DNA of 64,000 nucleotides from Diadema antillarum (Eukaryota), in the NCBI RefSeq assembly GCF_040938485.1, contig NW_027270918.1, positions 5,518,001-5,582,000 on the forward strand, in the 5' to 3' direction. A program made the position numbers and the translations under genes. Below, piece after piece: positions 1,506 through 63,515 of the stretch. Within the stretch, counting starts at the first letter, position 1, and each line of letters starts with the position of its first letter. The notes under the pieces are model-generated. The model worked only from the letters and a program-made list of their open reading frames with translations. It did not search any database and was not told the DNA's origin.

Positions 1506-2351
1506 ATGATGGCACTCACAACGTATTCCAATACCATTTTTTCGGTGGATGCCAACCTCGTGAATGTTACCGGGGCACAAGTGGCCCCTTCAACCAACAC
1601 CAAAATTCATACACTTATTTTGCCCTCCGTGTTCACAGGTTCGATAATTGCCGCAAACGTTTTAACGCTAGTAGCATTTTCTGTCGAAAAACGACTTCGA
1701 ACCTACAACAACTACTTCATCATCAACCTGTCCATTCTCGATTTCCTTGTTGGTTTGCATCTAATCGGCAGCGTTGTTCATACCTACATTGGTTACTATC
1801 CTCTCAACCAGTCGTTTTGTAAAATACTGAGCGGAATCGGGCAAGCGGTAACCAATGCCTCCAATTTCGTGGTCGTAATCATCTGTGTAGACCGACATCG
1901 TGCAACCTACGATCCGATCAACCACTTCATGTCTCGCCGCAAACGCAAAGCTATCTTTTTCAATTCTCTGGCCTGGTTGGTGGCATTCAGTTTCCGGATG
2001 ACATATGTGACGGCATGGGAGTTCATTGTCGATTTCGAGAACGGACGGGCTTGTCTTCGTCGATACACAAGATTACCAGGAGCATCGATCGTCGACACGA
2101 TTTTCATGTTTTACATGCCCTTTGCAGTCATTTCCGTGCTATATCTTCGTATCCTGAGAAAAATAAGACAAACTCGAAACAGGAAGAACGTCCCAAGAAA
2201 ATTTGTTTCTAACGCTGATGGGAGCAAGAAACATGTAACAATGACAAATGTCACGAAAGTAAACGCATCATCGACTTCGAGTTCCTCCGACACCAATGTT
2301 TCGACTCAGTTTGTGGCAGGCAAGAGCATTCAGAGAAGTTCACTCAAGAAG
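1506..2351 (+). CDS. GPCR A1 exon 1 (N-term to ICL3); class A orphan GPCR, muscarinic/histamine H3-like; 382 aa with exon 2
   Basis: TM1 AN, RLRTYNNYFIINLSILD (TM2 D2.50), C3.25, DRH (DRY variant), W4.50, ECL2 Cys, TM5 FYMP. The ORF runs past donor AAG|GTGAGA at 2351/2352 (phase 0), which is conserved in A2 and A3. Confidence 0.92.
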
Positions 2352-3165
2352 GTGAGAAGCGTGGAGGAGGAGAAGCTGACAAGTTGTAAGACATCAAATG
2401 TATTTCTCTGACAACAAAACCAGAAGAAATGTAGATATGGGGATACAGTTTTATGCTAAGAAAAAAAAAGACCCCACAGTATTATGAAAGGACTTTCCTG
2501 CTGTCTGATTTAAGTTTGAAAGTGGTTAGGTATCTATATGAACTTTGAAAGAAAGATATTTTTCAGAGGGGTGAAGGTTCAGGTGTGAGTTTCTTCACTT
2601 TGTCTCCCTCTACAAATTAAATTTGTTAAGGTCCAAGTGCTGATCTGTAAATTAAGAAATTAACAAATCAACAATGTCGGAAAAAAAGGAACCTTGTTTT
2701 CTGTTACGTGCCTGACAGCACAGAAAACTCGGAACTATTTATACAGAAATGTGTATCGTCATACTCGTAGATATCCATATATCATAAAAATATAAAGTGC
2801 CTGTACAGTGCGTATAAAAAAAGGTAATCCAACTTTGGAGGACTACCATTTCTTAATTGTCAGCTACGGAGAGCTCAATGTTAGTTGTGAGGAAAGAAGA
2901 ACTCTTCTTCTTTCCATTGGTGCCTAATTATGTTGACAAATATCACGCATGACTGAGCACATGAACTTTAAAGACAACAATGACAAACTACCCTTTTTCC
3001 AAGTTTGAGTGTCACATGAAGGAGCAATGCATGTCTCACTGAATGGATAAAATCTGTCAATGAAAGTGCCTAATTCTAATTTTCATCGATATTGAAAAAA
3101 GAGAGCTAGTTTGTGGTGTTCCTGTGTTATTGCTCTAGTTTTGTTCATCTTTCCACGTGAACAAG

Positions 3166-3468
3166 GTAAATCATGAGGCAGCATCCGAGACGAGGAAGGC
3201 AACACGTACTCTGCTCTTCATTGTCCTGTCTTTCGTGATTTCGTGGTTACCATACAACATCATCCAACTCATCTACGCCATCGAACCTAGCCTAATCTGG
3301 CCTGGCCTACCCCGCTCAGCAAGACTATTCTTCAGTCTGTTGCCGTTCGGCAACAGCCTTCTGAACCCCATCTCCTACGCGATCACCCAACCACTTCTAA
3401 GGGCTACACTCAGAAACATGCTGTGCTGCTGCTGTAAGAGAGACCCCTCTCTCACCGTAACAGTCTGA
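3166..3468 (+). CDS. GPCR A1 exon 2 (TM6, TM7, helix 8, CCCC tail)
   Basis: Acceptor AAG|GTAAAT in phase 0; SWLPYN (CWxP variant), NPISY (NPxxY), stop TGA. Confidence 0.9.
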   Translation, partial: VNHEAASETRKATRTLLFIVLSFVISWLPYNIIQLIYAIEPSLIWPGLPRSARLFFSLLPFGNSLLNPISYAITQPLLRATLRNMLCCCCKRDPSLTVTV

Positions 3469-4354
3469 TGCTAATAGCATGATTAACCAAAATCCAATGG
3501 TCCTATCATGCCCCAATGACCCTCCTCTTACACCCCCTTCCCTCTTCTTCCTCAGACCTGTAACTAGAGTTACACAGGGAAGGTGTTTAAAATAGGAAAT
3601 AGTGGACTTTTCTACGGGAGCGAAGCGACCGAACGTAGCAGGGTCTTGCACGAATTTGTTCAATCTGGGGTAGACGTGTGTAGCGGGAGAGCGCAGCAAT
3701 TGAATGGAACTGAAAACTGCACTGTACTGGACATGGGGAGGAGTGAATTGTTTTGTGAAAAAAAAACTTTGATTAAAAAGACGACACTTTGGTTATGTCT
3801 TTACATTGCAAAATAAAATTAATAAAACAAGTTTGTTTGTTTCTTATTACAGCATGATGCTTTCATTTTCTGATAAATCTATTTGAAAATGTAATATCCA
3901 ACCGTGGCGACCGAGTAGGGGGAAGATGAGGAATCTGCATTTTTGGAATTGAAATTCAACAATCTAGTGCACACATTCTGTGAAACACCTAGACAATTTT
4001 TAATACAAAAAAGGATGACAATATATTGGTTATTGTTCACATTTGCGAAAACAAAATAAAAACAAACGAATTTTTCAATTATCTTATTCAGGGCCCTACT
4101 AATAAGTTGTTTTAAAATGTAATATCTGCGTCAGAGCAGGGGGGGGGGTCCCTCCACCTCCCCCGCAACACACATATAAACGCGAGGGTTTTTTCTCTTT
4201 TACAATTTAAGTTCGACGATATGCGCACTTTAGGTGGAATATTCCATTTTTTGAAAATTTTCAGGCATGTGTATGTGTATGTGCATGTGTATGTGTATGT
4301 GTATGTGTACGTGTATACATGTGAAAGCGTATACTTCATGTAACCATCCGATTC

Positions 4355-4525
4355 GATTGAATGAAAACTGTATACTTTCAATGATTAGCTTGTACGGTAC
4401 ATGTATCGTTGTATTGTGTTATAAAGTCATATATAATTAATGTATTGTAGTAATGTTACGTAAGTGAGGGGACTGCAATCTACAAGTTCGCTTTTTAGCA
4501 GCTCCTCAATTTTCATTTCCATGAA
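4355..4525 (+). mobile_element. 3' fragment of the SINE family seen at 24097-24535
   Basis: Colinear similarity to about 24295-24455 (aaa.tgtatact.caatgatta.cttgt.cggtacatgta ... gtgaggggactg ... caattttcattt). Confidence 0.55.
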
Positions 4526-5368
4526 GTTCTTTTAAGAGCCAATATGTATTATCATGTTCCAATATATGAAATCATGTCCAAGTGTATTACCTATGTTTGA
4601 TTGGAAATGAAAAAAAAAAACATGCATGTGAACATGCATGCGTGTGAAATGAATGAAAATGATATGTAATGATATACATCGATCATTCATTAAAATTGCA
4701 AAAAAGGGACAAACAAAGCGATAATATTCTTTCATTGCTGCCTGATGTGAAAAAAACAAAAGAATCGATTTTCTTCATTCATTAGAGAAGAAAATGACAA
4801 ACAACAAACAAACACATACCAGATAAAGAATACAATTGCTGCCAAAAAAAAAAATAGACAGCAATTATAGAAAACTTTCAGAGTATCATGACAAGTTGTA
4901 TTTACAGGGAGTATACCTGAACTTATAGGCCGAAAAAGATTTTTCAAGTTTTGTGATATATTCTTTTCATTATTTTTCAGAGCCATGCACGTACTGATCG
5001 ATCAATTTCTTTTTGAGTATTTGAATAATCTGCCGTAAAGCATGCCACGCTGTATTACAAGTGAATTTCTCTTCGTTAGCTCTTGAATGTTGTCTTTGAA
5101 ATGTATAGAAGCAAAATCAAATGTCATCGAACTCTTTGCAATACGCATTTGCGTTTGTTTGTTTTTTTTTTTTGGTCAAAATTGCCTTTGTCTTGTACCA
5201 ATTGCTTTCAAATGCCTACTTGCAAGCATAAAGTAGGCCCAGACAAATTTTGCAATGACATCTTGCGACTTTACCATAATGTGCACGCAGTCTTTGATTG
5301 TTGTGTAATTAGAATGAAGGGTTTTAGAGATACTAAGCCATCAAATGATATCTTTCATTGTCTTTACC

Positions 5369-6937
5369 GTTACAGCTCGTTATTCCGAAGGTTTTCTAGT
5401 CCGAATGTTTGTTATTCCGAAGGTTCGTTAATCCGGAAATGAAACAAAGCTCTCTATTCCGAAGGTTCGTTACGGACCCTATATCATTTCGGATCAACGA
5501 CATTTCTTATTGTAACATCATATGGGCAAATTCGATTTATGGCAATGATACCATATTCAAATTGCAAAAGAAAGCTATTCGTATATGTGCAAATGCTGGT
5601 TATTATGATCACACAGATGCCCCTTTTTTCTCTTTTAAGATTTTAAAGGTAAACGATATTCATATTTTACAAAACGCACTTTTCATGTCCGTTTCAATAC
5701 TAATTCATTACCGTGTTCATTCGAATTATGTTCCATCCAAATGCAGAAATTCATTGGTATCCAACAAGGCAAGCAACAGACGTGCACTTATGTAACCCCA
5801 AAACACTCTTAGTCCATAAATCCATTAGACATACTGGCCCAGATATTTGGAATAAATTACAGTACCTCCTGAATTACGTAACGTCAAGTCCATATATTCA
5901 TTCAAAAAAGCAATTAAGAACATGTTGATCACACAGTACCAGCACGATCAGTGATGTACTTTGGCGTTGCAGAAACCCTACCCTTTTCATAAGTGATCAT
6001 TCTTTATCCCTGGCTATTGTAGTTTGTTCTTGAGACTCGGCACATACGGGACACTCCTCCCACATACGTCTTTGTCTCTAATGTCTATTATTCTTGTTAT
6101 GTCGGGCAAGTTATACTCTTCTATACGCCCTAGTAGGGCGCTGAACTGTGTATACTTCGTAGTTGTTCTTACTTCTCTTCTATTAATTCAATGTAACCTT
6201 TATTCGAAAATAGCAACACTGTTTCATGTCTATTTGTGCGTGAAATGTGAATTCATTACCGTAATCTATAATCATGTACATGTGTATGTATTTATTGTGA
6301 GTTTGATCTGGCAGGCCTGGTATCGGAAGGTTTCTATCACCCTCTCTTTCTTGCTCTTTCTGTCTCTCCTATTATTCCTCTTATCCACGAGCATCATGCT
6401 GAATCCCCCTTTCTCTAACGTAACGTATTGTATCATCGGTTGCCAAAGGGTCAAGCTTATAGCTTATTATTGGCGGCCGTTCTGTATGGTATTTCATAAT
6501 ACATGTATTGTAATTTTGTCACAAATGTATTTGTAATCACAATTGTTGAAACTAGCTATAAACGAGTCTCATATTTGTATATCATTATGTTTGATTATGT
6601 TGAAAAGGTGTATATGATGCCATACGGAGAATGAATAAATCAAATCAAATCAAATCAAATCTTAATAACCTTCGGAATAACGAACCCTATTTCACTTTCG
6701 GATTAACGAACCTTCGGAATAACGAACCCTATTTCATTTTAGGATAAACGAGCCTTCGGAATAGCGAACCCTATTTCACTTTCGAATTAACGAACCTTCG
6801 GAATAACGCCACGAATGTTCGGATTAACGAACCCTTTTTCATTCTCGGATTAACGAACCTCTAAGTATAGGGAATTTACGTGTTTCGGATTAACAAACCT
6901 TCGCAATAACGAACCTTCGGAATAACGAACAGCACCC
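5369..6937. mobile_element. Foldback/MITE-like element built of TTCGGA(A/T)TAACGAACC units, interrupted by a LINE fragment
   Basis: The left part carries units as GGTTCGTTATTCCGAA and the right part as their reverse complement. It is flanked by near-direct 9-mers gtctttacc/gtcttgacc and is absent from the paralogous site at about 420. Other copies lie at 16444-16757 and about 60140-60270. Confidence 0.7.
5501..6661 (+). mobile_element. 5'-truncated CR1/L2 (Crack-like) LINE: ORF2 C-terminal remnant, 3'UTR and (CAAAT)n tail
   Basis: ISYCNIIWA...LQKKAIRI...IHILQNALFM and TGPDIWNKL are homologous to the ORF2 C-terminus at 29175-29714 (frameshifted). It ends GAATAAAT(CAAAT)4 and splits a repeat unit between AACGA and ACCTTC. 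Confidence 0.85.
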
Positions 6938-7929
6938 GTCTTGACCACATTTTGCTTACTTCTAAATGTGTGCCGTTTGCAAAATGTCCACAACACATCA
7001 TGATAATGTCGCTTGGGCTTCAAGTACGTTTGGCTTATATATCCAATAATTAAGGGACATCTGTTTTTCTCATAAATATGACTTTGAAGACATCAAAGTA
7101 ATCACACGTCGATATTCCTGAGATACTGTCTTAATATTAGTATCAACTCCCATATGATAATTTTGAGTACTAAATGGTGTCTTCTTTATGAAGGAATGCG
7201 GTTACTGAAATATTAGTTCATCAAACACAGTACCAAATCATTATTTCTTCGGCAGCTATTTTATATTATATCTTTCTTTCTTTTTTATTTCTTTGTCATT
7301 CGTCAACAAATATGCTCCTTCTTTGTGGAATACCATGGACAATTTATTTGGTGTCACTTAATGAGAATAGACCAAAGTTATGTACAAAACGCATCTCCAG
7401 ACGAGGGCTTGAACAACTATAAATCAGCAAGCTTGGTGGCTACGGCTGCTTTGCCGCCATTAGCTCTTAGATAGCGGAATCAGGTGACCTGAATCTATTC
7501 AGAGACTCGGCCTTGTTCTCCGTTTTCTTCAAAATACGTTGCGTTGATGATCCCTTGGATAGAGGGTTCCCAGTATTCGTTCGTTAGATTTGGAATAATG
7601 GGGAATGATTCCCATTCTGCTTTCATGGAATCTGTTTCACGGATTGTTCTAGCACTTCATTCACTCCTCGACTAGTTAGTAAATGTCAAGGGAAGTAGCA
7701 TTGTGCCGCACTTCAGAGTATTTTCAAATATTTTACTTTCACATTGAATTTAGAAATCCGCTTTCTCTATTGCATGTGGAATATTACTTTAAGTAAAATC
7801 TCTAAGAAACATATAAAATTGAAAAAAAAAATCTGAAACGCGATCATGATGATCGTCATTGAAAATTTTTTGCCTCACAGAAGTCGTAAAGATTAGGCAA
7901 TTACAAAGACACGATTCTCTTCTTCAGCG

Positions 7930-7938
7930 TATATAAAG
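7930..7938 (+). promoter_or_regulatory. TATA box of GPCR A2
   Basis: Same TATATAAAGAAGCTGA motif as A1 and A3. Confidence 0.6.
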
Positions 7939-8073
7939 AAGCTGAAGAGAGGGTCTACTAAAATTCGAGAAGTGGAGCTTTTCTGGCAATCTGGAATGTA
8001 AGTTTTCTCCAGTGTGACCGCTCGTTGATCTTGTATGTACATTTAGTTCGTGAAGACCTAATCATCACCAGAT

Positions 8074-8922
8074 ATGATGGCAGTCACAACGTATTCCAAT
8101 ACCATTTTTTCGGTGGATGCCAACCTCGTGAATGTTACTGGGGTACAAGCAGTCCCCTCAACCAACACCAAAATTCATACACTTATTTTGCCCTCCGTGT
8201 TCACAGGTTTGATAATTGCCGCAAACATTTTAACACTAGTGGCATTTTCTGTCGAAAAACGACTTCGAACCTACAACAACTACTTCATCATCAACCTGTC
8301 CATTCTCGATCTTCTTGTTGGCTTGCGTCTAATCGGCAGCGTTGTTCATACCTACATTGGTTACTATCCTCTCAACCAGTCGTTTTGTAAGATACTGAGC
8401 GGGATCGGGCAAGCGGTAACCAATGCCTCCAATTTCGTGGTCGTAATCATCTGTGTAGACCGACATCGTGCAACCTACGATCCAATCAACCACTTCATGT
8501 CTCGCAGCCGACGTAAAGCTATCTTTCTCAATTCTCTGGCCTGGTTGGCCGCATTCGGTTTCCGGATGACATATGTGACGGCATGGGAGTTCATTGTCGA
8601 TTTCGACAACGGACGGCATTGTCTTCGTCGATACACAAGCTCACCAGGAGCATCAATCATCAACACGATTTTCATGTTTTACATGCCCTTTGCAGTCATT
8701 TCCGTGCTATATCTTCGTATCCTGAGAAAAATAAGACAAACTCGAAACAGGAAGAACGTCACAAGGAAATTTGTTTCTAACGCTGATGGGAGCAAGAAAC
8801 ACACGACAACAATGGCAAACCTTATGAAAGAAAACGCATCATCGACTCCGAGTTCCTCCGACACCAATGTTTCGACTCAGTTTGTGGCAGGCAAGAGTAT
8901 TCAGAGAAGTTCGCTCAAGAAG
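8074..8922 (+). CDS. GPCR A2 exon 1; 383 aa with exon 2
   Basis: Close paralog of A1 with the same TM1-TM5 motifs; donor AAG|GTGAGA at 8922/8923, phase 0. Confidence 0.92.
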
Positions 8923-9478
8923 GTGAGAAGCGTGGAGAAGGAGAAGCTAACAAGTTGTAAGACGTCAAATATATTTCTCTGACACCAAAACCAGAAGAAA
9001 TGTAGATATGGGGATGCAGTTTTATGACACGAAAAAAAAAAGGAACCCACAGTATTATGTAAGGATTTTCCTGCTGTCTGCTTTAAGTTTGAAAGTGGTT
9101 GAGTATCTATATGAGTCTTGTTTTCTGTTACGTGCCTAACATTATCACAGAAAACTCTATGTACACAGGAATGTGCATCGCCATACTCGCAGATATCCAT
9201 ATATCAGAAAAGTATGGTACCTGTATTAGTTGCCCTATTGAAGTGTGAAATTAGTGTTCATGAACTGCCATGTTTACATTGCACGGAGATTACGTTTACT
9301 GTAATGGTTAATTTTTACTTTTACTATTTTGTATTTAGATGTTTCGAAGTGATTCGTGGCTTCGTAATGTCCCGGAGTCTAGTTCTAATTTTCATCGAGA
9401 TTGAAAAAAACAGGAGAGCTAGTTTGTGGACTTAATGTGTTGTTGATATAGTTTTCCTTATCTCTTTACGTGAATAAG

Positions 9479-9781
9479 GTAAATCACGAGGCAGCATCCG
9501 AGACGAGGAAGGCAACACGTACTCTGCTCTTCATTGTCCTGTCTTTCGTGATTTCGTGGTTACCACACAACATCATCCAACTCATCTACGCCATCGAACC
9601 TGGCCTAATTGTTCCCGGCCTACCCCGTTCAGTAAGAATATTCTTTAGTTGGTTGGCGTTCGGCAACAGCCTTCTGAACCCCATCTCCTACGCGATCACC
9701 CAACCACTTCTAAGAGCTACACTCAGAAACATGCTGTGCTGCTGCTGTAAGAGAGACCCCTCTCTCACCGTAACAGTCTGA
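9479..9781 (+). CDS. GPCR A2 exon 2
   Basis: Acceptor AAG|GTAAAT; SWLPHN, NPISY, CCCC tail. Confidence 0.9.
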   Translation, partial: VNHEAASETRKATRTLLFIVLSFVISWLPHNIIQLIYAIEPGLIVPGLPRSVRIFFSWLAFGNSLLNPISYAITQPLLRATLRNMLCCCCKRDPSLTVTV

Positions 9782-11184
9782 TGTTTATAGATTGATTAAC
9801 CAAAGTCCAGTAGTTCTAACTTGCCCCAATTAATGTCCCCCCCCCCCTTCCCTCGCCTTCTTCAGCCCTCCTCAGACCTGTCTAGAGTTACACAGGGAAG
9901 GTGTTTAAAATAGGAAAAAGTGGACTTTTCTACGGGAGCGAAGCGACCGAACGGAGGAGTCGGGTCCTTTGCGAATTTGTTCAATCTGGGGTAGACGTGT
10001 GAGCGGGAGAGCGTAAATATCGAACGGAACTGAAAAACCGAACGGATCTGAACAGGGGGAGGAGTGAAATTTTTGTGAAAAAAAAATCTTTGATTAAAAA
10101 AAGTAAGACAACACTTTGGTCTTATTGGTTATTTCTTTACATTGCAATATAAAACTAAGAAAACAAGTTTAGTTTGGTTTTTTATTGCAGCATGATGCTT
10201 TCATTTTCTGATAGAATTATTTGAAAACGTAATATCCAATCGCGGCAACCGAGTAGGGGGAAGATAAGGAACCTGCATTTTTCGAAATGAAATTCAACAA
10301 TCTGGTGCACACTTTTGGAGAAACACCTAGAAAATTTTTCAATGCAAAACGAATGACAATACATTGGTTACTGAAAACTCAATAAAAAAGAAACATAATC
10401 TTTAAATTAGCTTATTCAGATCCCTGCTAATCAAGTTGTTTAAAAGGGTAATATCTGAGTGCTGCCTCCGAGAGGGGGAGGGGTGGGGGGAGGGTGTGGT
10501 ATCCCTCCTACGCCTCCTCGACACTCATGAACTATACACGCTGGGGCTTTTTCGTTTTTACGATTTCAATTCGATGATATGCTGCGCACACTAGGTAGAA
10601 TATTCGGAAAATTATGTTACTCATTTAAATTGCAAAAAAAGAAAAAAGAAAAGAAAAAACTAAGCAAGAATATTTCTTTCATCGTTGCCTGCTGTGAAGA
10701 AAAACATCGATTTTCTTCAATCACCCCTGCTCACGAGCGACATTTCATACACTTTTAGGACGTCCAGTCATCACATAGAAATAATGTGCTAACGCCACAT
10801 TCGTTTCTATAAAGCAAGATAGGTGTTTATGAATAAATACACTTGTAGTGGTAATTGTGAATATCATAAAATTTTTCCTTTGTCTACTGTCCGGCATGAT
10901 GTAAGAAATAGAATCGATGTACGTGGAATATCATTCACAGCTTTGCCCTTACCTAGAGTTCACAACCACAAGCTTATGTTCTTTGTCAAACACTTGTATC
11001 ACTTGTATTATAATGTCATTTTGCAGCACCGTCAAAACGGAATTCCTTTGTGGTTATGTAAATGTTTTTTTTTTCTAAAGCAGCCAGAATTGATATGTTG
11101 TACATCAATCTGTCTAGAGATACGTTGCTATTAGAAAAAAATGCAATGTAGTAACAAGGGAATGGCAAATCTGAATCGCAAACT

Positions 11185-11187
<3 letters not shown>

Positions 11188-11227
<40 letters not shown>

Positions 11228-11344
11228 TAATATGTAAATAATATGTAAATGTATATATATTATACATAGAATGCATATGAATAAATATACATACATATTA
11301 TTAATACATATATACTGTACATACATATAATATATATCTAGGTG

Positions 11345-11376
<32 letters not shown>

Positions 11377-11714: not shown

Positions 11715-11758
<44 letters not shown>

Positions 11759-13480: not shown

Positions 13481-13511
13481 TTGAGATGAATAATGATGTC
13501 AAATCTAGGCA

Positions 13512-13672
13512 NNNNNNNNNNNNNNNNNNNNNNNNNNNNNNNNNNNNNNNNNNNNNNNNNNNNNNNNNNNNNNNNNNNNNNNNNNNNNNNNNNNNNNNNN
13601 NNNNNNNNNNNNNNNNNNNNNNNNNNNNNNNNNNNNNNNNNNNNNNNNNNNNNNNNNNNNNNNNNNNNNNNN
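13512..13672. other. Assembly gap
   Basis: Run of N. Confidence 1.
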
Positions 13673-15821: not shown

Positions 15822-16127
15822 TCAAATATTTACGCTTTTCTGTGGAGATCTTTCCTTGCAATGATTAAAAAGCATGTTCTTTAATGTTGACCTGAGAAGC
15901 GGCTGGCTTACTGCGTAGGAGATCGGGTTCAGAAGGCCGTTACAGGATGCCAACCAGGTGAAAAAGAGTCTTCCAGGTCGAGGTAATCCCTGGAAGACCA
16001 GCAGGGGATTGATGGAGTAGATCAAACCGATGATGCTCTGGGGTAACCAGGCAACAACGAAAGATAGTACGATGAACAAGAGGGTTCGTGTTGCTTTCCG
16101 CATTTCGGCAGCCGACTCACGCTTCCG
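15822..16127 (-). CDS. GPCR B1 exon 2 (TM6-TM7, C-tail)
   Basis: Polypyrimidine tract plus TTCCAG|CGG AAG CGT GAG, phase 0; AWLPQS, NPISY. Confidence 0.9.
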   Translation of the reverse strand, partial: RKRESAAEMRKATRTLLFIVLSFVVAWLPQSIIGLIYSINPLLVFQGLPRPGRLFFTWLASCNGLLNPISYAVSQPLLRSTLKNMLFNHCKERSPQKSVNI

Positions 16128-17701: not shown

Positions 17702-18592
17702 GATTGGTTTCGTGTTGATAGTTGAACCTGCTTTTCCGGTACTCCTCCTTGGCATATCTTGTCCATATTCCTTTTCTCTGACCGACTCAACGTCGGTATC
17801 GATAACTGGATCATTCAGAGACGAGGTTGTGGTGACCTTGGTAAGATCTGCAACAGCTGTACTGATATCATCCTTCACATCAAATTTCTTTTCGACAAGT
17901 TTCCCACCCCTCGTCTTTCTGATCTTTAGAAATATACGAAGGTAGAGAACGGAGATTATAACGAGCGGCAGGTAAAAGATAACAATGCCATTGACTATGG
18001 ACACGCCTGGCATGTTAGTATATCGACGAACGCAGTGACGTCCGTTGTCAAAGTTGTCCACGAACTCCCATGTTGTGATGAACAACATCCAAAAAGAAAA
18101 AGCACCAAGCCACGCCAGGGAGTTAAGAAACAAAGCCTTACGTTTGCTGCGAGTCATAAAATGGTTGATGGGGTCGTAAGTTGCACGATGTCGGTCAGCG
18201 CAGATGATCACGACGACGAAATTAGAACCACCGATGATAGCCTGACTTATCCCGCTCAGGATCTTGCAAAGGGTTTGGTTCAAAGGATAGTAGCCGACGT
18301 GGGTATGGACAACAGTAATAATAAGATATACACCAGAGAGAAGATCAAGAATGGATAGGTTGATGATAAAGTAGTTGTTGTAAGTGCGAAGTTTTTTGTT
18401 GACGCAAAAAGCTGCAAGAGTGAGAAAATTTGCGACAATGATGCAGGCCGTAAACAGAGAGGGCCAGAGGAGACCGAAAATGCTGGAAGAGTTCGACCCT
18501 CCAGATTTAGGGTATACTTCACTCCCGGTTGAATTGTCGAGAACAATTTCAACCCAAAGTGTAGGGTATGTCTGCACTGATGCCGTGGTCAT
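17702..18592 (-). CDS. GPCR B1 exon 1; 398 aa with exon 2
   Basis: KKLRTYNNYFIINLSILD, C3.25, DRH, AWL, RHC, FYLP; donor ATC|GTAAGA conserved in B2 and B3, phase 0. Confidence 0.92.
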
Positions 18593-19031
18593 ATTTACCC
18601 TGATTATTACGTTGAAAGAAATAGTCTGTCTCCGATCTGGGAAGATTTACTTCACCAATCTCAGTAAACTACAAAGTCAAATAATATGTAAAGGAGCTGT
18701 ACAGACAAGGGCAAAAATGCATCAACTAACTGCAATGATAAGTATTTCACTTGACTTAGCAAATTGTCATGCTCTTTTGAAAGTAGCTCATTGATGCTGC
18801 AGAGAACTACGAGCAGTTTACTACCTGATACTGAATTCAAATTGCTAGAATATATGGAATTTTGCTCAAAGACGTGTTACAAGGCTGAGATGACAAGTTC
18901 ACAATCTCGATTAAAGCGGTAGACCTCCTGCAATGAGTCTCTTTATGACCAGGACGGTGTAAGCTATAAAATATAGAGATATAGGGTGATTCCGGAAAGC
19001 AATAACGAGGGTGTCTTAAAAACAAATATCC

Positions 19032-37658: not shown

Positions 37659-37817
37659 NNNNNNNNNNNNNNNNNNNNNNNNNNNNNNNNNNNNNNNNNN
37701 NNNNNNNNNNNNNNNNNNNNNNNNNNNNNNNNNNNNNNNNNNNNNNNNNNNNNNNNNNNNNNNNNNNNNNNNNNNNNNNNNNNNNNNNNNNNNNNNNNNN
37801 NNNNNNNNNNNNNNNNN
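37659..37817. other. Assembly gap
   Basis: Run of N next to (TA)n. Confidence 1.
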
Positions 37818-39299: not shown

Positions 39300-39445
39300 N
39301 NNNNNNNNNNNNNNNNNNNNNNNNNNNNNNNNNNNNNNNNNNNNNNNNNNNNNNNNNNNNNNNNNNNNNNNNNNNNNNNNNNNNNNNNNNNNNNNNNNNN
39401 NNNNNNNNNNNNNNNNNNNNNNNNNNNNNNNNNNNNNNNNNNNNN
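39300..39445. other. Assembly gap
   Basis: Run of N. Confidence 1.
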
Positions 39446-43174: not shown

Positions 43175-43462
43175 TTACTTTCTTGGGGATCTTTCCTTGC
43201 AATGAATAAAGAGCATGTCCTTCAGGGTTGACCTGAGAAGCGGCTGACTTACTGCGTAGGAGATCGGGTTCAGAAGGCTGTTACAGGATGCCAACCAGGT
43301 GAAAAAGAGCCTTCCAGGTCGGGGTAGGCCCTGTACGATAAGTAGGGGATCGATAGAGTAGATCACACCGATGATGCTCTGAGGTAACCAGGCAACAACG
43401 AAAGACAGCACGATGAACAAGAGGGTTCGTGTCGCTTTCCGCATTTCGGCAGCCGACTCGCG
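43175..43462 (-). CDS. GPCR B2 exon 2 (acceptor inferred 6 nt downstream of the paralogous site)
   Basis: AWLPQS, NPISY. The paralogous CAG reads CCA here, and the nearest in-frame AG is TCAAAG|CGC GAG. A short C-tail frameshift relative to B1 gives SPRK-stop. Confidence 0.75.
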   Translation of the reverse strand, partial: RESAAEMRKATRTLLFIVLSFVVAWLPQSIIGVIYSIDPLLIVQGLPRPGRLFFTWLASCNSLLNPISYAVSQPLLRSTLKDMLFIHCKERSPRK

Positions 43463-45590: not shown

Positions 45591-46481
45591 AACTGGTTTC
45601 TTGTTGGTTTTTGGACTTGCTTGCTTGGTGCTCTTCCGTGGCATATCTCGTGCAAATTGTTTTTCTCCGACCGACTCAACGTCCATGTCGATGGCTGCAA
45701 CATTCAGAGAAGAAATCGTGGTGTCCTTTGGAACATTTGTGACCGCTGTACTGAGATTATCGTCAACATCGAATTTTCTTTCGACAAGTTTCCCACCTCG
45801 TGTTTTTCTGATCTTTAGATATATACGAAGGTAGAGAATTGAGATTAAAAAGAAGGGCAGGTAAAAGACAACAACGACATTGACTACGGAGACTCCTGGT
45901 ATTCTGGCATATTTATTAACGCAGTGACGTCCGTTATCAAAATTGTCGATGAACTCCCAGGCAGTGATGAACATCATCCAGAAAGCAAAAGCAACAAGCC
46001 AGGCCAGAGAGTTAAGAAGCAAAGCCTTACGTTTGCTGCGAGTCATGAAATGGTTGATGGGATCGTAAGTCGCACGATGTCGGTCTGCGCAGATGATCAC
46101 GACGACGAAATTAGAAGCACTGAGGAGGGACCGACTTATCCCATTCATAATCTTACAAAGGTCCTGGTTTAGGGGATAGTAACCGACGTGGGTATGGAGT
46201 ACACTGATGATCAGGCGTAAGCCAGACAGGAGATCAATGATGGATAGGTTGATGATGAAGTAGTTGTTGTAAGTGCGAAGTTTTTTGTTCACGCAAAAAG
46301 CTGCAAGAGTGAGAAAATTTGCGACAATGATGCAAGATGTAAACAGGGAGGGCCAGAGGAGACCGAAAATGCTGGAAGAATTCGACCCTCCAGATTTAGT
46401 GTGTACTTCATTCCCGGTTGAATTGTCGAGAACAGTTTCAACCCAAAGAGTAGGGTATGTCTGCACTGATACCGTGGTCAT
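45591..46481 (-). CDS. GPCR B2 exon 1; about 392 aa with exon 2
   Basis: Same TM1-TM5 motifs as B1; donor GTT|GTAAGA, phase 0. Confidence 0.9.
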
Positions 46482-46899
46482 ATTTATCCTTGCTTATTAC
46501 GTTCAGAGAAATAGTCTGTCTCCGATCTGGGAATATTCACTTCACTATGTTGGTGAAATACAGAGTAAATCATATATATATCATATCAGCTTTCCAAACA
46601 AAGGGGCAAACGCTTCAACTTTGTACGATTATTTGTCACCTGACACCCCAAAGCACCATTATCTCCTGAACGTAGATTCGTGTAAGAAAATAGAGATGCG
46701 AGAAATTCACTTCCTAACAATGAAGTGTAAATTTTGCTAGAGAAAATAGAATATCAATTGAATTAGGCACGTGGAGCAAGGCTGTGGTGACAAATTGATC
46801 AAAGATTATAAAAAGTGATATATTGTACATCAGCTGCAGTGTCTCTTTGCACGATCTGTAAGTGACACAAAGTCACTACGCAAGAATATAAAAACAAAA

Positions 46900-48094: not shown

Positions 48095-48142
<48 letters not shown>

Positions 48143-49186: not shown

Positions 49187-49228
<42 letters not shown>

Positions 49229-51730: not shown

Positions 51731-51830
51731 TGAGCGAAACACACCCTCATCAGACAGTCCCTCCTTTACATTTAACCTAAAGAAATTGATAGATTTTTGA
51801 ATCGACGTGCTCACCCCCCCAAAAAAAAAA

Positions 51831-53542: not shown

Positions 53543-53792
53543 AGGAAAGTGAAAAAGTTGATCCCGATCAACACGATTAATAAGCACGAATAGATAAGAT
53601 TTCCTGCGTTTTGATACTACCCAAGACAATCTGATGCGATGATCATGATAAAAAATTAATTGTGTTAATCGTCGAAAATTTTTGAACCGTCCAAAATTTT
53701 TCTACGATTAATCGCGATTGCTACGACTGACGTTAAGATCTGTCTAATCGCACTTCTTAATCGTGTTGATCGGGATCGACTTTTTCACTTCC
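53543..53792. repeat. 250-bp hairpin element with about 40-bp TIRs
   Basis: GGAAAGTGAAAAAGTTGATCCCGATCAACACGATTAA versus TTAATCGTGTTGATCGGGATCGACTTTTTCACTTCC. Confidence 0.75.
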
Positions 53793-53799
53793 CTCCTTC

Positions 53800-53849
<50 letters not shown>

Positions 53850-55827: not shown

Positions 55828-56133
55828 TCAAACTTTCACTTTCTTTAGCGAAGATCTATTCTTGCAATCAATGAACAGTAAGTCCTTCAGCGTTGACCTG
55901 AGAAGCGGCTGGCTCACCGCGTAAGAGATCGGGTTCAGAAGGCTGTTTCCTGTCGCCAACCAGGTGAAGAAAAGCATCAAAGGCCTGGGTAGACCCCGCA
56001 CAATAAGTAGAGGATTGATGGAATAGATCAAACCAATGATGCTCTGAGGTAACCAGGCAACAACGAAAGACAGCACGATGAACAAGAGGGTTCGTGTTGC
56101 TTTCCGCATTTCGGCAGCCGACTCGCGCTTACC
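55828..56133 (-). CDS. GPCR B3 exon 2
   Basis: Acceptor ATGCAG|GGT AAG CGC GAG; AWLPQS, NPISY. Confidence 0.9.
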   Translation of the reverse strand, partial: GKRESAAEMRKATRTLLFIVLSFVVAWLPQSIIGLIYSINPLLIVRGLPRPLMLFFTWLATGNSLLNPISYAVSQPLLRSTLKDLLFIDCKNRSSLKKVKV

Positions 56134-56762
56134 CTGCATATAGAGAATAAGATAAATACATTTTGAAAGTAATTTTCTAAACTAATTTCCTTGAATTAAG
56201 TAAATTCATTTTTTTTCAGCTATAAAGTAGATTGTAGTTTTATTGAAAATTCGAATTGATATTTTTCGTTAATTCGTTTTTTTACATTAAGAAATTTTTA
56301 CATTCGAACAATTTTTCGTGTCTTATCAGTCGTGACCCATTAATATGTGTAATTCAGAACAGAGTTATATATTATCTTTAGACCTATATGTCTGTACAAA
56401 CAAATACAAACGATGCATTTTCTGTTGCACTTTATCAAGATTGGAATATATTACATTATTGTAAAGAAGAAATATTGAAAAATGTAGACAAAATATAAAA
56501 AAAAATGATTGTATCGTTTTTATTTTTTTTTTTTGGTTGGAATAGGAAAACAAAATTTTGGTATATTTGGGATTCGTTAAGGACAAACATTCTTTTAAAT
56601 CCTTAATAGTTTTCGACAGCTTAGAGTTTTCATAAACGATGCTGAAATATTTTCATTGTTTTAACGTGGGCTTGTCGTAACCGAGAAACGAAAGATAACA
56701 ATTACGAATCGAAATCAAGCAAGTAGATATTCCTTTAAAAAAGGATAAAGCTGATTTCTTAC

Positions 56763-57644
56763 ATTCGATTTCTTGTCGGGATTTGAACCGGCTTTCTTGG
56801 TGCTCCTTGGCACATCTTGTCCAAATTGATTTGATCCGGCCGACTCAACGTCCATGTTGATGGCTGAATCATTCTGAGACGACGTTGTTGCGTCCTTCGG
56901 AAAATCTGGAACCACTATACTGAGGTTATTCTTCACATCGAATTTCTTTTCGACAAGTTTCCCACCCCGTGTCTGTCTGATTTTTATAAATATGCGAAAG
57001 TAGAGGATGGAGATTAAAAAGAAGGGCAAGTAGAAAGTAACAACGACACCGAGTAAGGAGACTACTGGTATTGCGAAATACTTGCTAAGGCAGTGACGTC
57101 CGTTGTCAAAGTTGTCGATGAACTCCCAGGCTGTGATGAACATCATCCAGAAAGCAAAAGCACCAAGCCACGCCAGGGAGTTAAGAAACAAAGCCTTACG
57201 TTTGCTGCGTGTCATGAAATGGTTGAGTGGGTCGTAAGTTGCACGATGTCGGTCAGCGCAGATGATCACGACGACGAAATTAGAAGCGCTGAGGAGTGAC
57301 TGACTTATCCCACTTTCAAGCTTACAAAGCTCCTGGTTAAGGGGATAGTAGCCAATGTGGGTATGTATAACGCTAATGATCAGGACCAAACCAGATAGGA
57401 GATCGAGAATGGATAGGTTGATAATGAAATAGTTGTTGTAAGTGCGAAGCTTTTTGTTCACGCAAAAGGCGGCAAGATTAAGACAGTTTGCGACAATGAT
57501 GCAAGCCGTAAACAGGGAGGTCCAGAGGAGACCGAAAATACCGGAAGAGTTTGACCCTCCAGATTTTGTGTAAACTTCACTCCCGGTTGAATTGTCGAGA
57601 GCAGTTTCAACCCAAAGTGTAGGGTACGTCTGCACTGATGCCAT
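56763..57644 (-). CDS. GPCR B3 exon 1; 395 aa with exon 2
   Basis: Same TM1-TM5 motifs; donor AAT|GTAAGA, phase 0. Confidence 0.9.
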
Positions 57645-58061
57645 GGTCAGCTTACCTCGATTATACTTGATATTACGTTGAGAGGGATTTTTCTGTCTCC
57701 GATCTAGGAAGGCTTCACTTCAGCAGAGTGTCAGAAAATCACAAGAGTCAATTATATAAATGCCTCAACTTTACATGCTTAGCATTTCACTTGACCTCGC
57801 AAGGTATCATGGTATTCTGAAAGTCCAGACCTACTAAAGCTGTTCCGAGAGATCCGGGAAATTCAATTTCTTGACAATAAACTGTAAAACTTACTAGAGT
57901 GAATGGAATGTCAATTAAATACACGTGGTGCCAGGCTGAGATGACAAAATCCTCAGAATTGAGAAAAGTGGCATACACCCCCTGCAATTAATCCCTCTTA
58001 GGCAGGTATGACCTTACTTACATAGAGTTGGAATCTAAAACGCTGGAATCTAAAGAGTAAA

Positions 58062-58145
58062 GTTTAAAAAGCTCGCTCACTGTTGACTAGAAAATTGGCA
58101 TTATCAAGTGACTGAATATCACTGCGACGTGTTTCAAAGCCGCCA
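58062..58145 (-). promoter_or_regulatory. B3 promoter-homologous block (eroded)
   Basis: Aligns to the B1/B2 block. TATA reads TTTAAA, only the distal CCAAT (58098-58094) is kept, and the E-box reads CAAGTG. Confidence 0.45.
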
Positions 58146-61100
58146 ACATTTTCGTCTATACAAGCTTACAACCTCCTTTATACAAAGACCTGAACGTTAT
58201 TGAACAGACATTTGGAAAATAAACTGCTGACTTACGGAACTCCGAGACATCTCCTCTTGTGTTATTTTGTTTTATTCTTCTTGACAAATAATGCACTTCC
58301 AAAAGGATTACACTGTTTAAAGTGCTTATCAGGAACCTCGCTGTGGGTTTAATAGGATTATAGACAACATTAGGCAATGAACAATGATGAATGCATGTTG
58401 GCATGTCATAAGACAGTTTCATTTAGGAATAAGTTGCTTGTAACAAAAGAGCCACAATGATCTTGGCTGTACCATGCTGCCTTTTAAGAGAATGAAAATG
58501 AAAATAATCATGATTTTGTTTCGTTCAAAAAAAGTAATCGTAGCACTTTTCGCAGCATACTGTTTTTGTTTTGTTTGACTTGGGAGTCTGAGTTTAAACG
58601 AAAAGTGCAATGAACAAAAAAAAAAATGGAATTGCCTTTAATGAACAGGTACACAATGGAACGACGGAACAGAGATCACACTCGTTCACACACTTACGTC
58701 TGTCGTTTCTTTTGTGAGAAATGACGAGTATATGACTCAAGAAACTGTCACCTCTCTGAATATTCTGCGTCTGCATCGAAAACCCCAGCATGAATTACTG
58801 ACCTAGGTTTTTTATTTTCTGTAAGAATAGAATTATATCAAGAGAGAAAAGGAAGCCACCGTTGCCATGCTCCTTCCTGCAGATGCTGACGTCATCAACG
58901 GTTTCTTACAAAGACATTTCTTTTCCAAGAGTAAGATACTGTCAAGTAAAATAGAGGATCGTGTGATCTGTGTAGCGGTATTACAGATATATAAACTCAA
59001 GAAAGGAGAAAAAGGAGGGGAGGGGTACCATACTTGTCATCTTTTCTGAGTGTTTTTTTAATGAAAGGCTTTCCAGTTCTATCCTTTGCTCTTTTTTAGT
59101 TTGTGACCTCAGAAGGCACAAATGAATTTAAAAAAAGTCTGCTATGTGGAATTCTCAAAACCATGAGAGCAAGTAGCACGGCTTGCTTGTTCTTGCAGTT
59201 TTAAGATCTTTTTTGATTCTGTGCGAGTTTCTCTCTCCCTTTCTTTCTGAATGCAAAAGCATTGCGGATGAAAATTGCTGTGCAAATTGCGATACTGCAA
59301 GTTCCGAAGCCGATGGGAAAGCGAGAATGTATATAAAAAGTAATTTCATTTTTTTTTCTTGCTTATGTATGTGGTAGACCGTTTCAATGTGGATTATATA
59401 GGCCTACTCCTTTTTAAAGGCATGTAAGAGAAACTTTCAATTTAAAATCAGTCAACAAAATATTTGATTAACAGACTGCACTTCATTAATATAGATTGTC
59501 GACTGGCATGAAAGCGAAATATATAAAACAATAAAGGATCAATGAAGGGGCACATTAAAGGAATTGTTGAATGATGAATCATCTACTTTATTAACAAAGT
59601 AATAACTAGTTAGACATTAAAAATAAGTGCGTCCTATTCATGATGATACGAAAAGTCGAAATGGACAGATATTAACACGCTTTATGCAGTTAATCCAAAT
59701 CAGATAAAGCAGTCATGTTTGAGAAAATGGATAGACCTACTACAGAGCATTAATTTGGAAATGATGCAAAGTTACAGCCTGTTTAGCATAACTTGTTATT
59801 AAATCTGCAAGTGTCCTGATTATGTGAGCAGTAAGACAAGTGAAAGGGTAAGGCATTTTTAAATAAATTTTACCGTTCCTACATGATGTTCGAAGTGCTT
59901 TTAAACTCCTACAGCAAACACACTCCCTTATGGTTCTTGAATTGTTAAAGAGAATAACCAAAGAGACAGTTTGATTTTGATTTGATTTGATTTCTTTAAA
60001 AAAAAGGTTGAAAGCCTGCTATCAGCGAGGCCGTGCATAAGGAATAAAAGAACTGAATCATGGATAAACAATATAAGACGAAAATAAAAGAGGGTGCACA
60101 TGAAACAAACGATCCAAATAGGGATTTTTTTTCTTCGTTATTTACGAAATTACCGAATAACGAATCTTACTTCATTTTCGGATTAACAAACCTTCAGAAT
60201 AACGACTCTTGCTCCATTTCCGGATCAATGAATATGCGGAATAGCGAAACTTTAGAATAATGAACTGTAAGCCCTTAAAATAAGACGTCGTCTGTGAGTT
60301 TTCATTTACTCCGCATATGGCTTGTAGCAGTGTGTTGCGTATATTGGCAAACACACTTTCTGAATTTGACAAAGAGTAACAGCAAACCTTTTCTCTTTTT
60401 TTTTGCAATCGATTTATGTTGAACTAGTCATATAATAACAAGATGATTACGAAACTATTTTCTTTCATTCCTCCCTACATCAATTGTATTGCCGTTGTTG
60501 AATTTTAAGAAATCAATGCAGTTGCTATAATATCCTATCAACACTTGTGATCCATTTCTTAGCACTGTAATTAACGCGTTCACACTGGTGCATCACGTAC
60601 AGATTACTAGTCTTGCAACTTTCTAAGACGAAAACATTTTGAAACTTTATGTTCCTTCAAATTTCCATATACATCTTATAATGTTACACAATAACACGAT
60701 TGCACATCTTAGCCACCTCCTGTAGATACACTATAAAAATTATACGAGAAAAATTATGAATGTGAAATAATCAGTATGAATGCTCATTGCCTTGCCAGTG
60801 TTACACCTTGAACATAATTTTTTGCTAAACCATCAAGTACATTCAGACCGTCAACAATACGCTTCTGTGACGTCTATATCATCGTATATATGTTCATTCT
60901 GTTCAACCAGCTAATCTTTATAGTATGAATACAGTATGAATAATTCAAGTAGCAAACTATAAATACGAGGGTCATGGGCAGCATTGTAATTTTGTACAAT
61001 CTTCTTTTTCCATAATAATTATTCACACAATGGACTTCATTCTGCCTGGTGTCGTTTAATCTGAAACTTTACCAGTTTACACCAGGCAATGATAGGCAAA

Positions 61101-61871
61101 TTAAAAACCTCGCATTAACGCACTCAATATAGGTCGTACCAATGTCAAACCCTTACAACCCTCCATGCAAACATATATGTTGATATTGATAAACATGTTG
61201 CTTCTTCTTACCTGAAAGAAGAGAAGACCAAAAGCCCGCCCAGTTGACTTGACGTGGGATGAACATGTGATTATCTGTCACTTTCTCGGAAAGTGTTCCA
61301 CAATGGCTTCTTCTATTTTTTTTTTGAGGGGGGGGGGGGGCGTGTTTAGCTTCCAAAAATGAATGAAGGCATCCCCTTCTTTTTTGCTCTTAGTTTCTTC
61401 GCAGTTAAATAAATTTATGTTTGACTAATTGACTAGAATTGTCTATATATAATTTTACTTTTCAGCCATGAAAGATCAATAGCGATAACCAAAGGTGCGT
61501 GTTTGCTGTAAAGAGTAGCTACCATTAAGTATGTTTATCATAAAATCAATAAATAAATGATAATAAGAATAACAGTTGTGCAGTTAAATCACTTGTGACA
61601 ACTGTGGATGGCCATTGTCCGTCTTTGTCTGTGTCTATGCCAAGCAAGCAATTCCATCTTTTCATTATAGGGTTATTTGCAGGAAAAGTTGCGTCGTGTA
61701 TGGTACTTCATGCATTAAGTATAGACTGCGCAGCTTAGCATTCAAAGTACAGTGTACTGAAAGACACTGGAAGTAATGATCATGTGGTCGGATTACCCAA
61801 GAGGAGAGTTTTGCGATTTGACACTGTGTAACAGGTTGCACTGAACCCGCTGATTAATGTGCGTGATCATA

Positions 61872-62451
61872 TTAAAGGACAAGTTTACCTTTATAAACAT
61901 GTGGATCAAGTGAATGCAGCAATATTAGTAGAAGACATCAGTGAGAGTTTGAGGAAAATCGCACTATCCGTTCAAAAGTTATGAATTTTTGAAGTTTCTT
62001 CTCAGTCATTGCTTGATGAGAATACTACTACAGCTTGTGATGTCACATGTGTACAACGATATAAAGAAAACATAGGGAAAGTTCATCATATTTTCACATA
62101 ACAAACATTGAACATTTCGCATAACAAAAGAACGCTTGACTTGCCTCTTTTTGAAGGCAGGGTAAAGAATATTACCCTTTAATGTCAGTGACAAGTCGAG
62201 GAAATGTGTACTTTTTTCGAAAAGTAAAATTTTGTGAAATTCTCTTTATATTTTACTTATATCCTTGTACGCATATGACATCAAACACTGTAGTAGTGTT
62301 CTTATGCAGCAGGGATTGTGCAGATACTTTAAAAATTCATATAACTTTTGAACAGATTGTCTGATCTTTCTCAAACTTCCATTGAAGTGTTCTACTATCA
62401 TTGTGCCATTCACTCAATTCACAGATTTATGAAGGTAGACTTGTCCTTTAA
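61872..62451. mobile_element. Second, older copy of the Kolobok-like AGGACAAG MITE
   Basis: TTAA-AGGACAAGTTTACC...GGTAGACTTGTCCT-TTAA; colinear with 35992-36567. Confidence 0.85.
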
Positions 62452-63209
62452 GTTAAATTGAAAGATTTATTAATACATAATTTATTCTAACAGTTCTTGA
62501 ACTGTATGGTATATAATGAAATTAGTGAAATGATGATGCCACAACTTGCAAAGTAAAGTTTGTATACTAATTCTTGAAATTTCTCCTTTTCAGACAAAAT
62601 CATGCCACTACAGCAAATTCTGACATATCTAATTGAACATTGTTTTGAAGTTATTCAGCTATGAATACTGTTTACATTTTTAAGGTACAAAAAAATGAAT
62701 ATTGTCAACTTTTTCTACATGATCAATGAGGAACTGGGAGATTATGACATCGTTAGCTCACTTTTTTTTTTCATTCACAGCAACTTTCCAGAAGTTTTAT
62801 GCCATACTTTTAGCCTTTACCCGATTTCGATCAATTTTCACTATTGGGCCTGTATGACCTATAACTCTTCATTTTTATACTATTTTGAATTAGTCTTGAA
62901 AGCCTCGTATCAGAAATAATTGGAAAGACAATGCGTGTTACTACTTATTACAGTGTTTAAATGTAGAAAGATTCTCCTTGAAGCAGAATTAAAAGAATGA
63001 TTGACTGCATTCTTATTTGTTAATGAGTGAGCTGTGGTTATGTTTATAAAACTTCAAAATGTCTAAAAGGCCAAATATTGTTTTCATTTATTTCATCATA
63101 GGTATTAACACAAATAATACATAATCCGTTTAATGTAAAAATCAATTTATTTCTTACCTTACCTCTGAATAATTTTTGTGGGTTACTCTTGGAGAATTTT
63201 TTTCTGAAT

Positions 63210-63515
63210 TCAAACTTTCACGTTCTTCAGTGAAGATCTATTCTTCCAATTAATAAACAGCAGATCCTTCAGCGTTGACCTGATAAGCGGCTGGCTCACC
63301 GCGTAGGAGATCGGGTTGAGAAGGCTGTTTCCGCTCGCCAACCAGGGGAAAAAAAGCATCACAGGCCTGGGTAGACCCTGCACGATAAGTACGGGATTGA
63401 TGGAGTAGATCAAACCGATGATGCTTTGAGGTAACCAAGCAACCACGAATGACAGAACGATGAACAAGAGAGTTCGTGTCGCTTTCCGCATTTCGGCAGC
63501 CGACTCGCGTGTCCC
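63210..63515 (-). CDS. GPCR B4 exon 2 (exon 1 expected beyond the window end)
   Basis: Acceptor TTTTGCAG|GGG ACA CGC GAG; AWLPQS, NPISY. Flanks are colinear with the B3 exon 2 region (about 55550-56580). Confidence 0.85.
   Translation of the reverse strand, partial: GTRESAAEMRKATRTLLFIVLSFVVAWLPQSIIGLIYSINPVLIVQGLPRPVMLFFPWLASGNSLLNPISYAVSQPLIRSTLKDLLFINWKNRSSLKNVKV

Follow-up and report, generated by a model that had tools for sequence, protein, structure and literature searches.

What becomes of an amine receptor once the residue that holds the amine is gone is the question raised by a 64-kb stretch of genomic DNA from the sea urchin Diadema antillarum (contig NW_027270918.1, positions 5,518,001 to 5,582,000), which was analysed at its full length and is called here the window. 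It contains a tandem array of class A G protein-coupled receptor (GPCR) genes whose best matches are muscarinic acetylcholine receptors and in which Asp3.32, the counter-ion for the amine, is absent from all copies. Our reading, which we hold with a probability of about 0.75, is that the array is intact, signalling-competent and muscarinic-derived, that Asp3.32 was lost once and early, and that the pockets now accommodate ligands that differ between paralogues and are probably not amines.

The open reading frame (ORF) listing of the window, together with tblastn searches, revealed six first exons and seven second exons of a single gene family. These amount to six intact class A GPCR genes of two exons each, plus the final exon of a seventh gene (Table 1). 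The first-pass annotation had counted seven two-exon genes; six of these are complete, and the seventh has only its second exon inside the window. The genes fall into two clades, A and B, which are interleaved along the array in the order A1(+), A2(+), B1(-), A3(+), a long interspersed nuclear element (LINE), B2(-), B3(-), B4(-). When GT-AG pairs were enumerated and then scored against the closest database proteins, the six complete genes gave intact coding sequences (CDS) of 373-398 residues, each with a single GT/AG intron of 0.46-2.1 kb located within the third intracellular loop (ICL3). All exons match the Pfam family 7tm_1 (PF00001), with 99-105 bits for the exon 1 products and 35-39 bits for the exon 2 products (cut-off 30.5). 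The model of B3 is identical to the NCBI D. antillarum protein P0018 (395/395 residues), and those of B2 and B1 match the D. antillarum proteins P0010 and P0005 at 389/392 and 391/398 residues, respectively. In clade A, the splice junctions agree with the NCBI models P0001 and P0003 of D. setosum; the acceptors at 3139 and 9452, which have better pyrimidine tracts, were rejected because the AAG/G sites reproduce the D. setosum junctions. P0003, the D. setosum orthologue of A1 and A2, is itself a model of 336 residues that diverges after the sixth transmembrane helix (TM6) and ends in an out-of-frame-looking tail, without TM7 or NPxxY; it may reflect a pseudogene, an error of assembly or a faulty gene model in that species.

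The second exon of the seventh gene, B4, is identical to the C-terminus of D. antillarum P0017 (101/101 residues). Since the P0017 gene spans 9.1 kb in the public assembly, with an intron of about 8 kb as compared to the range given above for the six complete genes, exon 1 of B4 lies some 7-8 kb past the end of the window. A further paralogue of 396 residues is found beyond P0017 in the same assembly, and the array therefore comprises at least eight genes. The public assembly and the window are 99.26% identical over 10.3 kb, and the window therefore represents D. antillarum in a different haplotype or assembly.

After alignment of the products with 85 homologues, residue positions in Ballesteros-Weinstein numbering were counted from the anchors N1.50, D2.50, R3.50, W4.50, P5.50, P6.50 and P7.50, and HMMER alignments to human M1 and to 5-HT1B served as a check on the register. 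At position 3.32, A1-A3 have Gly, and B1-B3 and P0017 (B4) have Ser, the Ser of B1 aligning with Asp105 (3.32) of human M1. At 7.43, the clade A genes have Phe, and B1-B4 have Ser, Ser, Thr and Ser, respectively; the clade B Ser is aligned with the Tyr in the 5-HT1B motif WLGY. Both residues by which aminergic receptors are judged, Asp3.32 and the Tyr7.43 that braces it, are thus absent from all copies. At the same time, the six complete genes keep N1.50, D2.50, the Cys pair between C3.25 and the second extracellular loop (ECL2), DRH, W4.50, P5.50, Y5.58, F6.44, CWxP (W6.48-x-P), N7.45 and NPxxY. The first-pass annotation had assigned 3.32, 7.43 and the activation motifs (D2.50, DR, W6.48-x-P and NPxxY) in the same way, and its picture of an amine anchor lost from receptors with intact switches agrees with the absence of Asp3.32, the retention of the microswitches and the purifying selection measured below. 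The residues in which it saw traces of ancestry are less uniform: Y6.51/N6.52 occurs as described in A1, and in A1 only, and W4.57 and W7.40 hold for most copies, with 4.57 being Arg in A1 and A2, 7.40 being Leu in A1, and each being Trp in all the others.

Few residues of the acetylcholine site are left. In the muscarinic orthosteric set of 11 (D3.32, Y3.33, S3.36, N3.37, W4.57, T5.42, A5.46, Y6.51, N6.52, Y7.39 and Y7.43), which the canonical muscarinic receptors retrieved by the profile search below show in full, the complete A genes retain 2-3 residues, and the complete B genes and P0017 (B4) retain one; A1 keeps N3.37, Y6.51 and N6.52, and A3 and clade B keep W4.57. Charged pocket residues specific to particular paralogues are found as well, namely R4.57 in A1 and A2, D5.42 in A1, E3.28 in B3, R3.33 in B2 and B4, and R7.35 in four copies.

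The loss of Asp3.32 had been presented as a property of the array, together with that of Tyr7.43, as if the two residues had gone as a pair. Neither statement stands. A word-based protein search returned 85 relatives, the named ones being from the sea urchins Diadema, Strongylocentrotus and Lytechinus, and in the residue alignment none of these 85 echinoid homologues has Asp3.32; the same is true of the whole 40-row clade, drawn from several echinoderm classes, that is described below. The loss of Asp3.32 is therefore family-wide and not specific to the array. Among 91 sequences (the 85 relatives and the six window models), position 3.32 is occupied by Arg in 21, Phe in 21, Ser in 16 and Gly in 15, followed by Gln, Ala, Asn and others. 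Position 7.43 behaves differently: of the same 91 aligned sequences, 73 have a residue there, which is Tyr in 38 and Phe in 23. Because many relatives retain Tyr7.43, its loss is local to the array and a few others, and the two residues were not lost together. The prediction that automated pipelines would mislabel such genes was correct, as the array genes are named 'muscarinic M2/M4-like' or '5-HT1A-like' by NCBI, and labels among the 85 relatives include 'muscarinic M1-M5-like', '5-HT1-like', 'TAAR-like' and 'octopamine receptor-like'. In the family as a whole, mean entropy is higher at the 33 generic ligand-pocket positions than at the remaining 160 transmembrane positions (1.93 vs. 1.35 bits, permutation p = 0.0006), and 6.55, 5.46, 7.39, 3.33, 6.51 and 3.32 are among the most variable transmembrane positions.

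Muscarinic-type ancestry of the array genes is well supported by sequence matches in the PDB, a fold search and a maximum-likelihood tree. In both clades the best PDB matches are muscarinic M1, M2 and M4 (E 1e-24 to 1e-25), followed by weaker ones to H1 (1e-15 to 1e-18, depending on the clade), 5-HT1A (1e-16), D2, beta-adrenergic receptors and H3 (1e-13 to 1e-14). The AlphaFold model of P0010, the D. antillarum counterpart of B2, has helices with a predicted local distance difference test score (pLDDT) of 80-90, and its best fold matches are M2, M4 and M5, with a target-normalised TM-score of 0.87. Hence the muscarinic half of the proposed muscarinic or H3/H4 ancestry holds, and the H3/H4 half was rejected, H3 being a far weaker PDB match than the muscarinic receptors. 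A profile of 44 full-length members was searched against 1.84 billion representatives and retrieved 781 proteins at E <= 1e-30, ranked with the echinoid family first, other Asp3.32-less groups next, and then canonical muscarinic receptors. The latter carry the DYSN...YN...YWY signature and show D3.32, Y3.33, S3.36, N3.37, T5.42, A5.46, Y6.51, N6.52, Y7.39, W7.40 and Y7.43.

For the tree, ICL3 was removed and the set was thinned to 89 rows; the analysis was run in IQ-TREE under LG+C20+F+G4 with posterior mean site frequencies (PMSF), and the tree was rooted on two monoamine-type receptors. Supports are given as ultrafast bootstrap (UFBoot)/SH-like approximate likelihood ratio test (SH-aLRT). 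The six window genes form one clade (100/97), with A at 99/92 and B at 100/99, within the echinoid family, and this family is in turn part of a clade of 40 rows, all of them without Asp3.32 (100/99, stem length 0.52). Its members come from the sea urchins Diadema, S. purpuratus and Lytechinus, the sea cucumbers Apostichopus and Holothuria, the starfish Asterias and the crinoids Anneissia and Antedon. The sister of this clade is an 8-row echinoderm group (98/87; Patiria, Diadema, Lytechinus and Acanthaster), in which Asp3.32 is kept in five of the eight rows. Together they make up 48 rows (100/97), all named members of which are echinoderms, nested with Asp3.32-bearing muscarinic-like receptors of the 'DYC' type (95/93), among which the hemichordates Saccoglossus, Ptychodera and Glandiceps and a fluke are named. 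The 48 rows and the DYC-type group adjoin the canonical muscarinic acetylcholine receptor (mAChR) clade (22 rows, 100/97), and the window genes fall outside that canonical clade. The tree thus nests the array genes in a muscarinic-like supergroup, in line with the derivation from amine-type receptors that was first proposed, and only two changes are required on it to account for the presence and absence of Asp3.32. It is strongly supported that the Asp3.32-less state marks an old clade of sea urchins, sea cucumbers and starfish, and crinoids probably belong to it too.

The genomic habit of the relatives bears on whether this array is something already known. In S. purpuratus, at least four family genes, the relative P0021 among them, are arrayed on one strand within 24 kb. 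These genes are not single ORFs; each spans 2.4-5.7 kb and encodes only 343-380 residues, and they must therefore contain introns. P0114 of Asterias rubens, a member of the Asp3.32-less clade, is a solitary single-exon gene, so that the two-exon, tandem-array habit is an echinoid trait of the family; both the intron in ICL3 and the tandem arrangement seem to have arisen in the echinoids within the clade. The surreal-GPCR groups analysed earlier in sea urchins are said to consist of single-exon genes. One might nevertheless identify the array with these sea-urchin expansions, already described by Raible et al. (2006), in which case it would hold nothing new. The family is, like them, echinoid-expanded, tandemly clustered (as seen in the Diadema and S. 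purpuratus arrays) and pocket-variable, and Libants et al. (2009, PMC2728731) derive the chemosensory GPCR expansions of urchins from biogenic amine receptors and also point out an urchin group of amine-like receptors with good support. What makes this identification unlikely is, on the one hand, the ICL3 intron of the Diadema genes and the introns of the S. purpuratus relatives and, on the other hand, the sea cucumber protein PIK45179.1 of A. japonicus, which by cluster look-up belongs to the Asp3.32-less clade: in a survey that used hidden Markov models (HMMs) built from surreal groups A-F, its best hit was 'muscarinic M1', and it was not listed as olfactory receptor-like (OR-like) (Marquet et al. 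2020, PMC7042368). That listing suggests that published surveys count the Asp3.32-less clade among amine receptors, of which A. japonicus is credited with 78 (PMC7042368).

The general idea of urchin expansions derived from amine receptors is not new, since it is stated by Libants et al. (2009, PMC2728731), and the word 'undescribed', first used for a possible receptor family, holds only in part. Literature searches on echinoderm receptors and D3.32 returned nothing specific, and a search on the Diadema genome and GPCRs returned nothing relevant. What we add is that the Asp3.32-less state is the mark of an old clade to which four echinoderm classes contribute members, the crinoids being the probable fourth.

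On our reading, the clade split off from muscarinic-type acetylcholine receptors, and the amine counter-ion Asp3.32 was lost once, early. How its receptors might work can be proposed as follows. Each copy would bind a small ligand in the usual transmembrane pocket, with no salt bridge to Asp3.32; the cavity would be enlarged by the small residue at 3.32 (Gly or Ser), and polar or cationic residues (Q/R3.33, R4.57 and R7.35) would take the place of the muscarinic aromatic cage. Each copy would then activate its G protein through CWxP, NPxxY and DRH. The ligands would differ between paralogues and, judging from the pocket residues, are probably neither acetylcholine nor classical monoamines. The first-pass annotation had put forward a chemosensory or a chemical-defence function as possible. 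That the ligands might be external cues, implying chemosensation, rather than internal signals is a tentative suggestion that we place somewhat short of an even chance.

The acidic residues of single copies lend themselves to another interpretation. In the clade III trace amine-associated receptors (TAARs) of teleosts, from which Asp3.32 is reportedly absent, Asp5.42 is said to act as a relocated counter-ion, and some copies of the array could in the same way still be amine or acetylcholine receptors. A1 has Asp5.42 and retains Y6.51/N6.52 and N3.37, B3 has Glu3.28, and the scaffold is muscarinic-like. However, each of these acidic residues is confined to one paralogue and lacks a counterpart in D. 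setosum or in other relatives, the Arg4.57 of A1 is nearby and may neutralise D5.42, the cage residues Y3.33, Y7.39 and Y7.43 are lost, and many relatives have Arg, of opposite charge, at 3.32. Retained amine binding of this kind appears quite unlikely; Asp5.42 with Arg4.57 in A1, and Glu3.28 in B3, could serve as alternative anchors for a ligand.

The ratio of nonsynonymous to synonymous substitution rates (dN/dS, Nei-Gojobori) is 0.16-0.43 among the window paralogues. Synonymous divergence (dS) amounts to 0.10 for A1 and A2 and to 0.3-0.5 for genes of one clade, whereas comparisons of A genes with B genes are saturated (>1.4). With respect to the D. setosum orthologues, dN/dS is 0.30 for A3 and 0.14 for B2, which indicates that each copy has been under purifying selection since the split of D. 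antillarum and D. setosum; the D. setosum orthologue of B3 was left out, because no single GT-AG intron allowed its CDS to be reconstructed. On the intact ORFs and splice sites and on dN/dS values well below 1, pseudogenes were rejected. Constitutive (ligand-independent) receptors or decaying relics without a specific ligand, to which the missing canonical anchor, the unusual DRH and N3.40 and a search for RNA sequencing runs over positions 1400-9900 that listed none might point, are highly improbable for the same reasons (six intact ORFs with their splice sites, and low dN/dS among both paralogues and orthologues), and because the microswitches and the disulfide are conserved across echinoderm classes and variation is concentrated at pocket positions instead of being even.

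Some observations weigh against our reading of a muscarinic-derived, signalling-competent array with diversified pockets. Within the window alone, the enrichment of variable sites in the pocket is weak (Fisher p = 0.08 and 0.17). Position 3.40, part of the PIF motif and usually a hydrophobic Ile, is Asn in all copies, and DRH stands in place of DRY; these two deviations, N3.40 and H3.51, may have an effect. The crinoid members of the Asp3.32-less clade sit on long branches. The tree rows were picked by similarity to the family profile and include few non-muscarinic amine receptors, and because of this narrow outgroup sampling the term muscarinic-derived rests on the tree taken together with the ranking of PDB scores. 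Finally, a search of 5.8 billion proteins returned no D. antillarum protein for A1-A3, the closest proteins being D. setosum orthologues only (85-89% identical), whereas B1-B4 do have models in D. antillarum; the clade A genes may be missing from the public annotation of that species.

A more far-reaching version of our interpretation is possible, although we consider it doubtful. It would have an echinoderm clade present in four classes, with Asp3.32 lost before the classes diverged, radiate in urchins until each genome held dozens of two-exon genes in tandem, their pockets being hypervariable. This would make it a second, unrecognised echinoderm chemoreceptor family apart from the surreal-GPCRs, and an invertebrate parallel to the vertebrate TAARs that derives from acetylcholine receptors and is tuned to non-amine, possibly acidic, cues.

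The positions of the exons and of the other features of the window are given in Table 1. The assembly contains three runs of N, all of them intergenic, and since they interrupt neither exons nor introns they do not affect the reading frames. How the blocks are ordered and spaced across these gaps rests on scaffolding; in D. setosum, a B1-like gene and the orthologues of A3, B2 and B3 share one chromosome and lie within about 40 kb, with order and orientation unchanged, which supports the order B1-A3-B2-B3 of the window. The LINE-type retrotransposon between A3 and B2 has an uninterrupted ORF of 826 residues with endonuclease (PF03372) and reverse transcriptase (PF00078) domains, a coiled-coil ORF1-like ORF upstream of it and a further ORF adjoining its 3' end. 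By eye, the translations of two short ORFs elsewhere in the window resemble the latter; they gave no Pfam match and may be fragments of the same retrotransposon family scattered among the receptor genes. Two mutually similar antisense ORFs over exon 1 of B1 and B2 are most likely not genes but side effects of conservation in the sense exons. A1-A3 have almost the same C-terminal tail despite a dS of 0.3 for A3 with respect to A1/A2, and these tails include a CCCC cluster that is a likely palmitoylation site.

Table 1. Receptor exons, assembly gaps and other features of the window (position 1 is the first nucleotide of the window).
Feature	Position	Strand	Remarks
A1 exon 1	1506..2351	+	TM1-TM5 and start of ICL3; G3.32, R4.57, D5.42
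A1 exon 2	3166..3468	+	TM6-TM7, helix 8, stop; Y6.51 N6.52, L7.40, F7.43
Short ORF	5409-5795	+	resembles the 179-residue ORF of the LINE
A2 exon 1	8074..8922	+	G3.32, R4.57
A2 exon 2	9479..9781	+	W7.40, F7.43
N gap	13512-13672		between the 3' ends of A2 and B1
B1 exon 2	15822..16127	-	W7.40, S7.43, aligned to 5-HT1B Tyr7.43
B1 exon 1	17702..18592	-	S3.32, aligned to M1 Asp3.32
Antisense ORF	18384-18794	+	136 residues, over B1 exon 1
Short ORF	24809-25174	-	resembles the 179-residue ORF of the LINE
A3 exon 1	26930..27751	+	first ATG 26930; listed ORF begins at upstream TTG 26897; G3.32, W4.57
A3 exon 2	28210..28512	+	F7.43
LINE-type retrotransposon	29175-33517	-	179-residue ORF adjoining the 3' end, 29175-29714; 313-residue ORF1-like ORF, 32576-33517
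N gaps	37659-37817 and 39300-39445		between the LINE and the 3' end of B2
B2 exon 2	43175..43462	-	S7.43
B2 exon 1	45591..46481	-	S3.32, R3.33
Antisense ORF	46273-46740	+	155 residues, over B2 exon 1
B3 exon 2	55828..56133	-	T7.43
B3 exon 1	56763..57644	-	S3.32, E3.28
B4 (seventh gene), exon 2 only	63210..63515	-	S7.43, P7.39; matches P0017 C-terminus

Echinoderm GPCR surveys and automated annotation count genes of this kind as muscarinic, serotonin or histamine receptors, and in this way the apparent neurotransmitter receptor repertoire is inflated. Recognising a muscarinic-derived clade without Asp3.32 would correct receptor counts and would give a dated example of the repurposing of an amine-receptor scaffold. 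If expressed in tube feet, spines or pedicellariae, the array would also supply candidates for deorphanisation in D. antillarum, an ecologically important reef grazer.

Among known systems, the array is closest to the muscarinic receptors, which are its best sequence and fold matches and the nearest group on the tree. The likeness extends to the motif between the first intracellular loop (ICL1) and TM2 (LRTYNNYF in the array, LKTVNNYF in M1), to W4.57 in most copies and W7.40 in all but A1, and to N3.37 and Y6.51/N6.52 in A1. The array differs from them in having other residues in place of Asp3.32, Y3.33, S3.36, T5.42, A5.46, Y7.39 and Y7.43, a short ICL3 of about 70-80 residues, DRH for DRY and Asn at 3.40, and in that its genes lie outside the canonical mAChR clade. 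With the TAARs it shares an origin in an amine-receptor lineage, expansion in tandem arrays, a diversified pocket and a partial dropping of Asp3.32. TAARs are, however, proven olfactory receptors that still bind amines, and their parent lineage is not of the muscarinic type, whereas the present family is muscarinic-derived and has many relatives with Arg or Phe at 3.32. The surreal-GPCRs of sea urchins and the OR-like genes of starfish and sea cucumbers are the known echinoderm expansions and have been proposed as chemoreceptors (PMC5442662; PMC7042368). Like these, the array represents a lineage-specific, tandemly clustered expansion of rhodopsin-type receptors; judged by how the surreal-GPCRs are described, it differs from them in its ICL3 intron and its much stronger similarity to muscarinic receptors.

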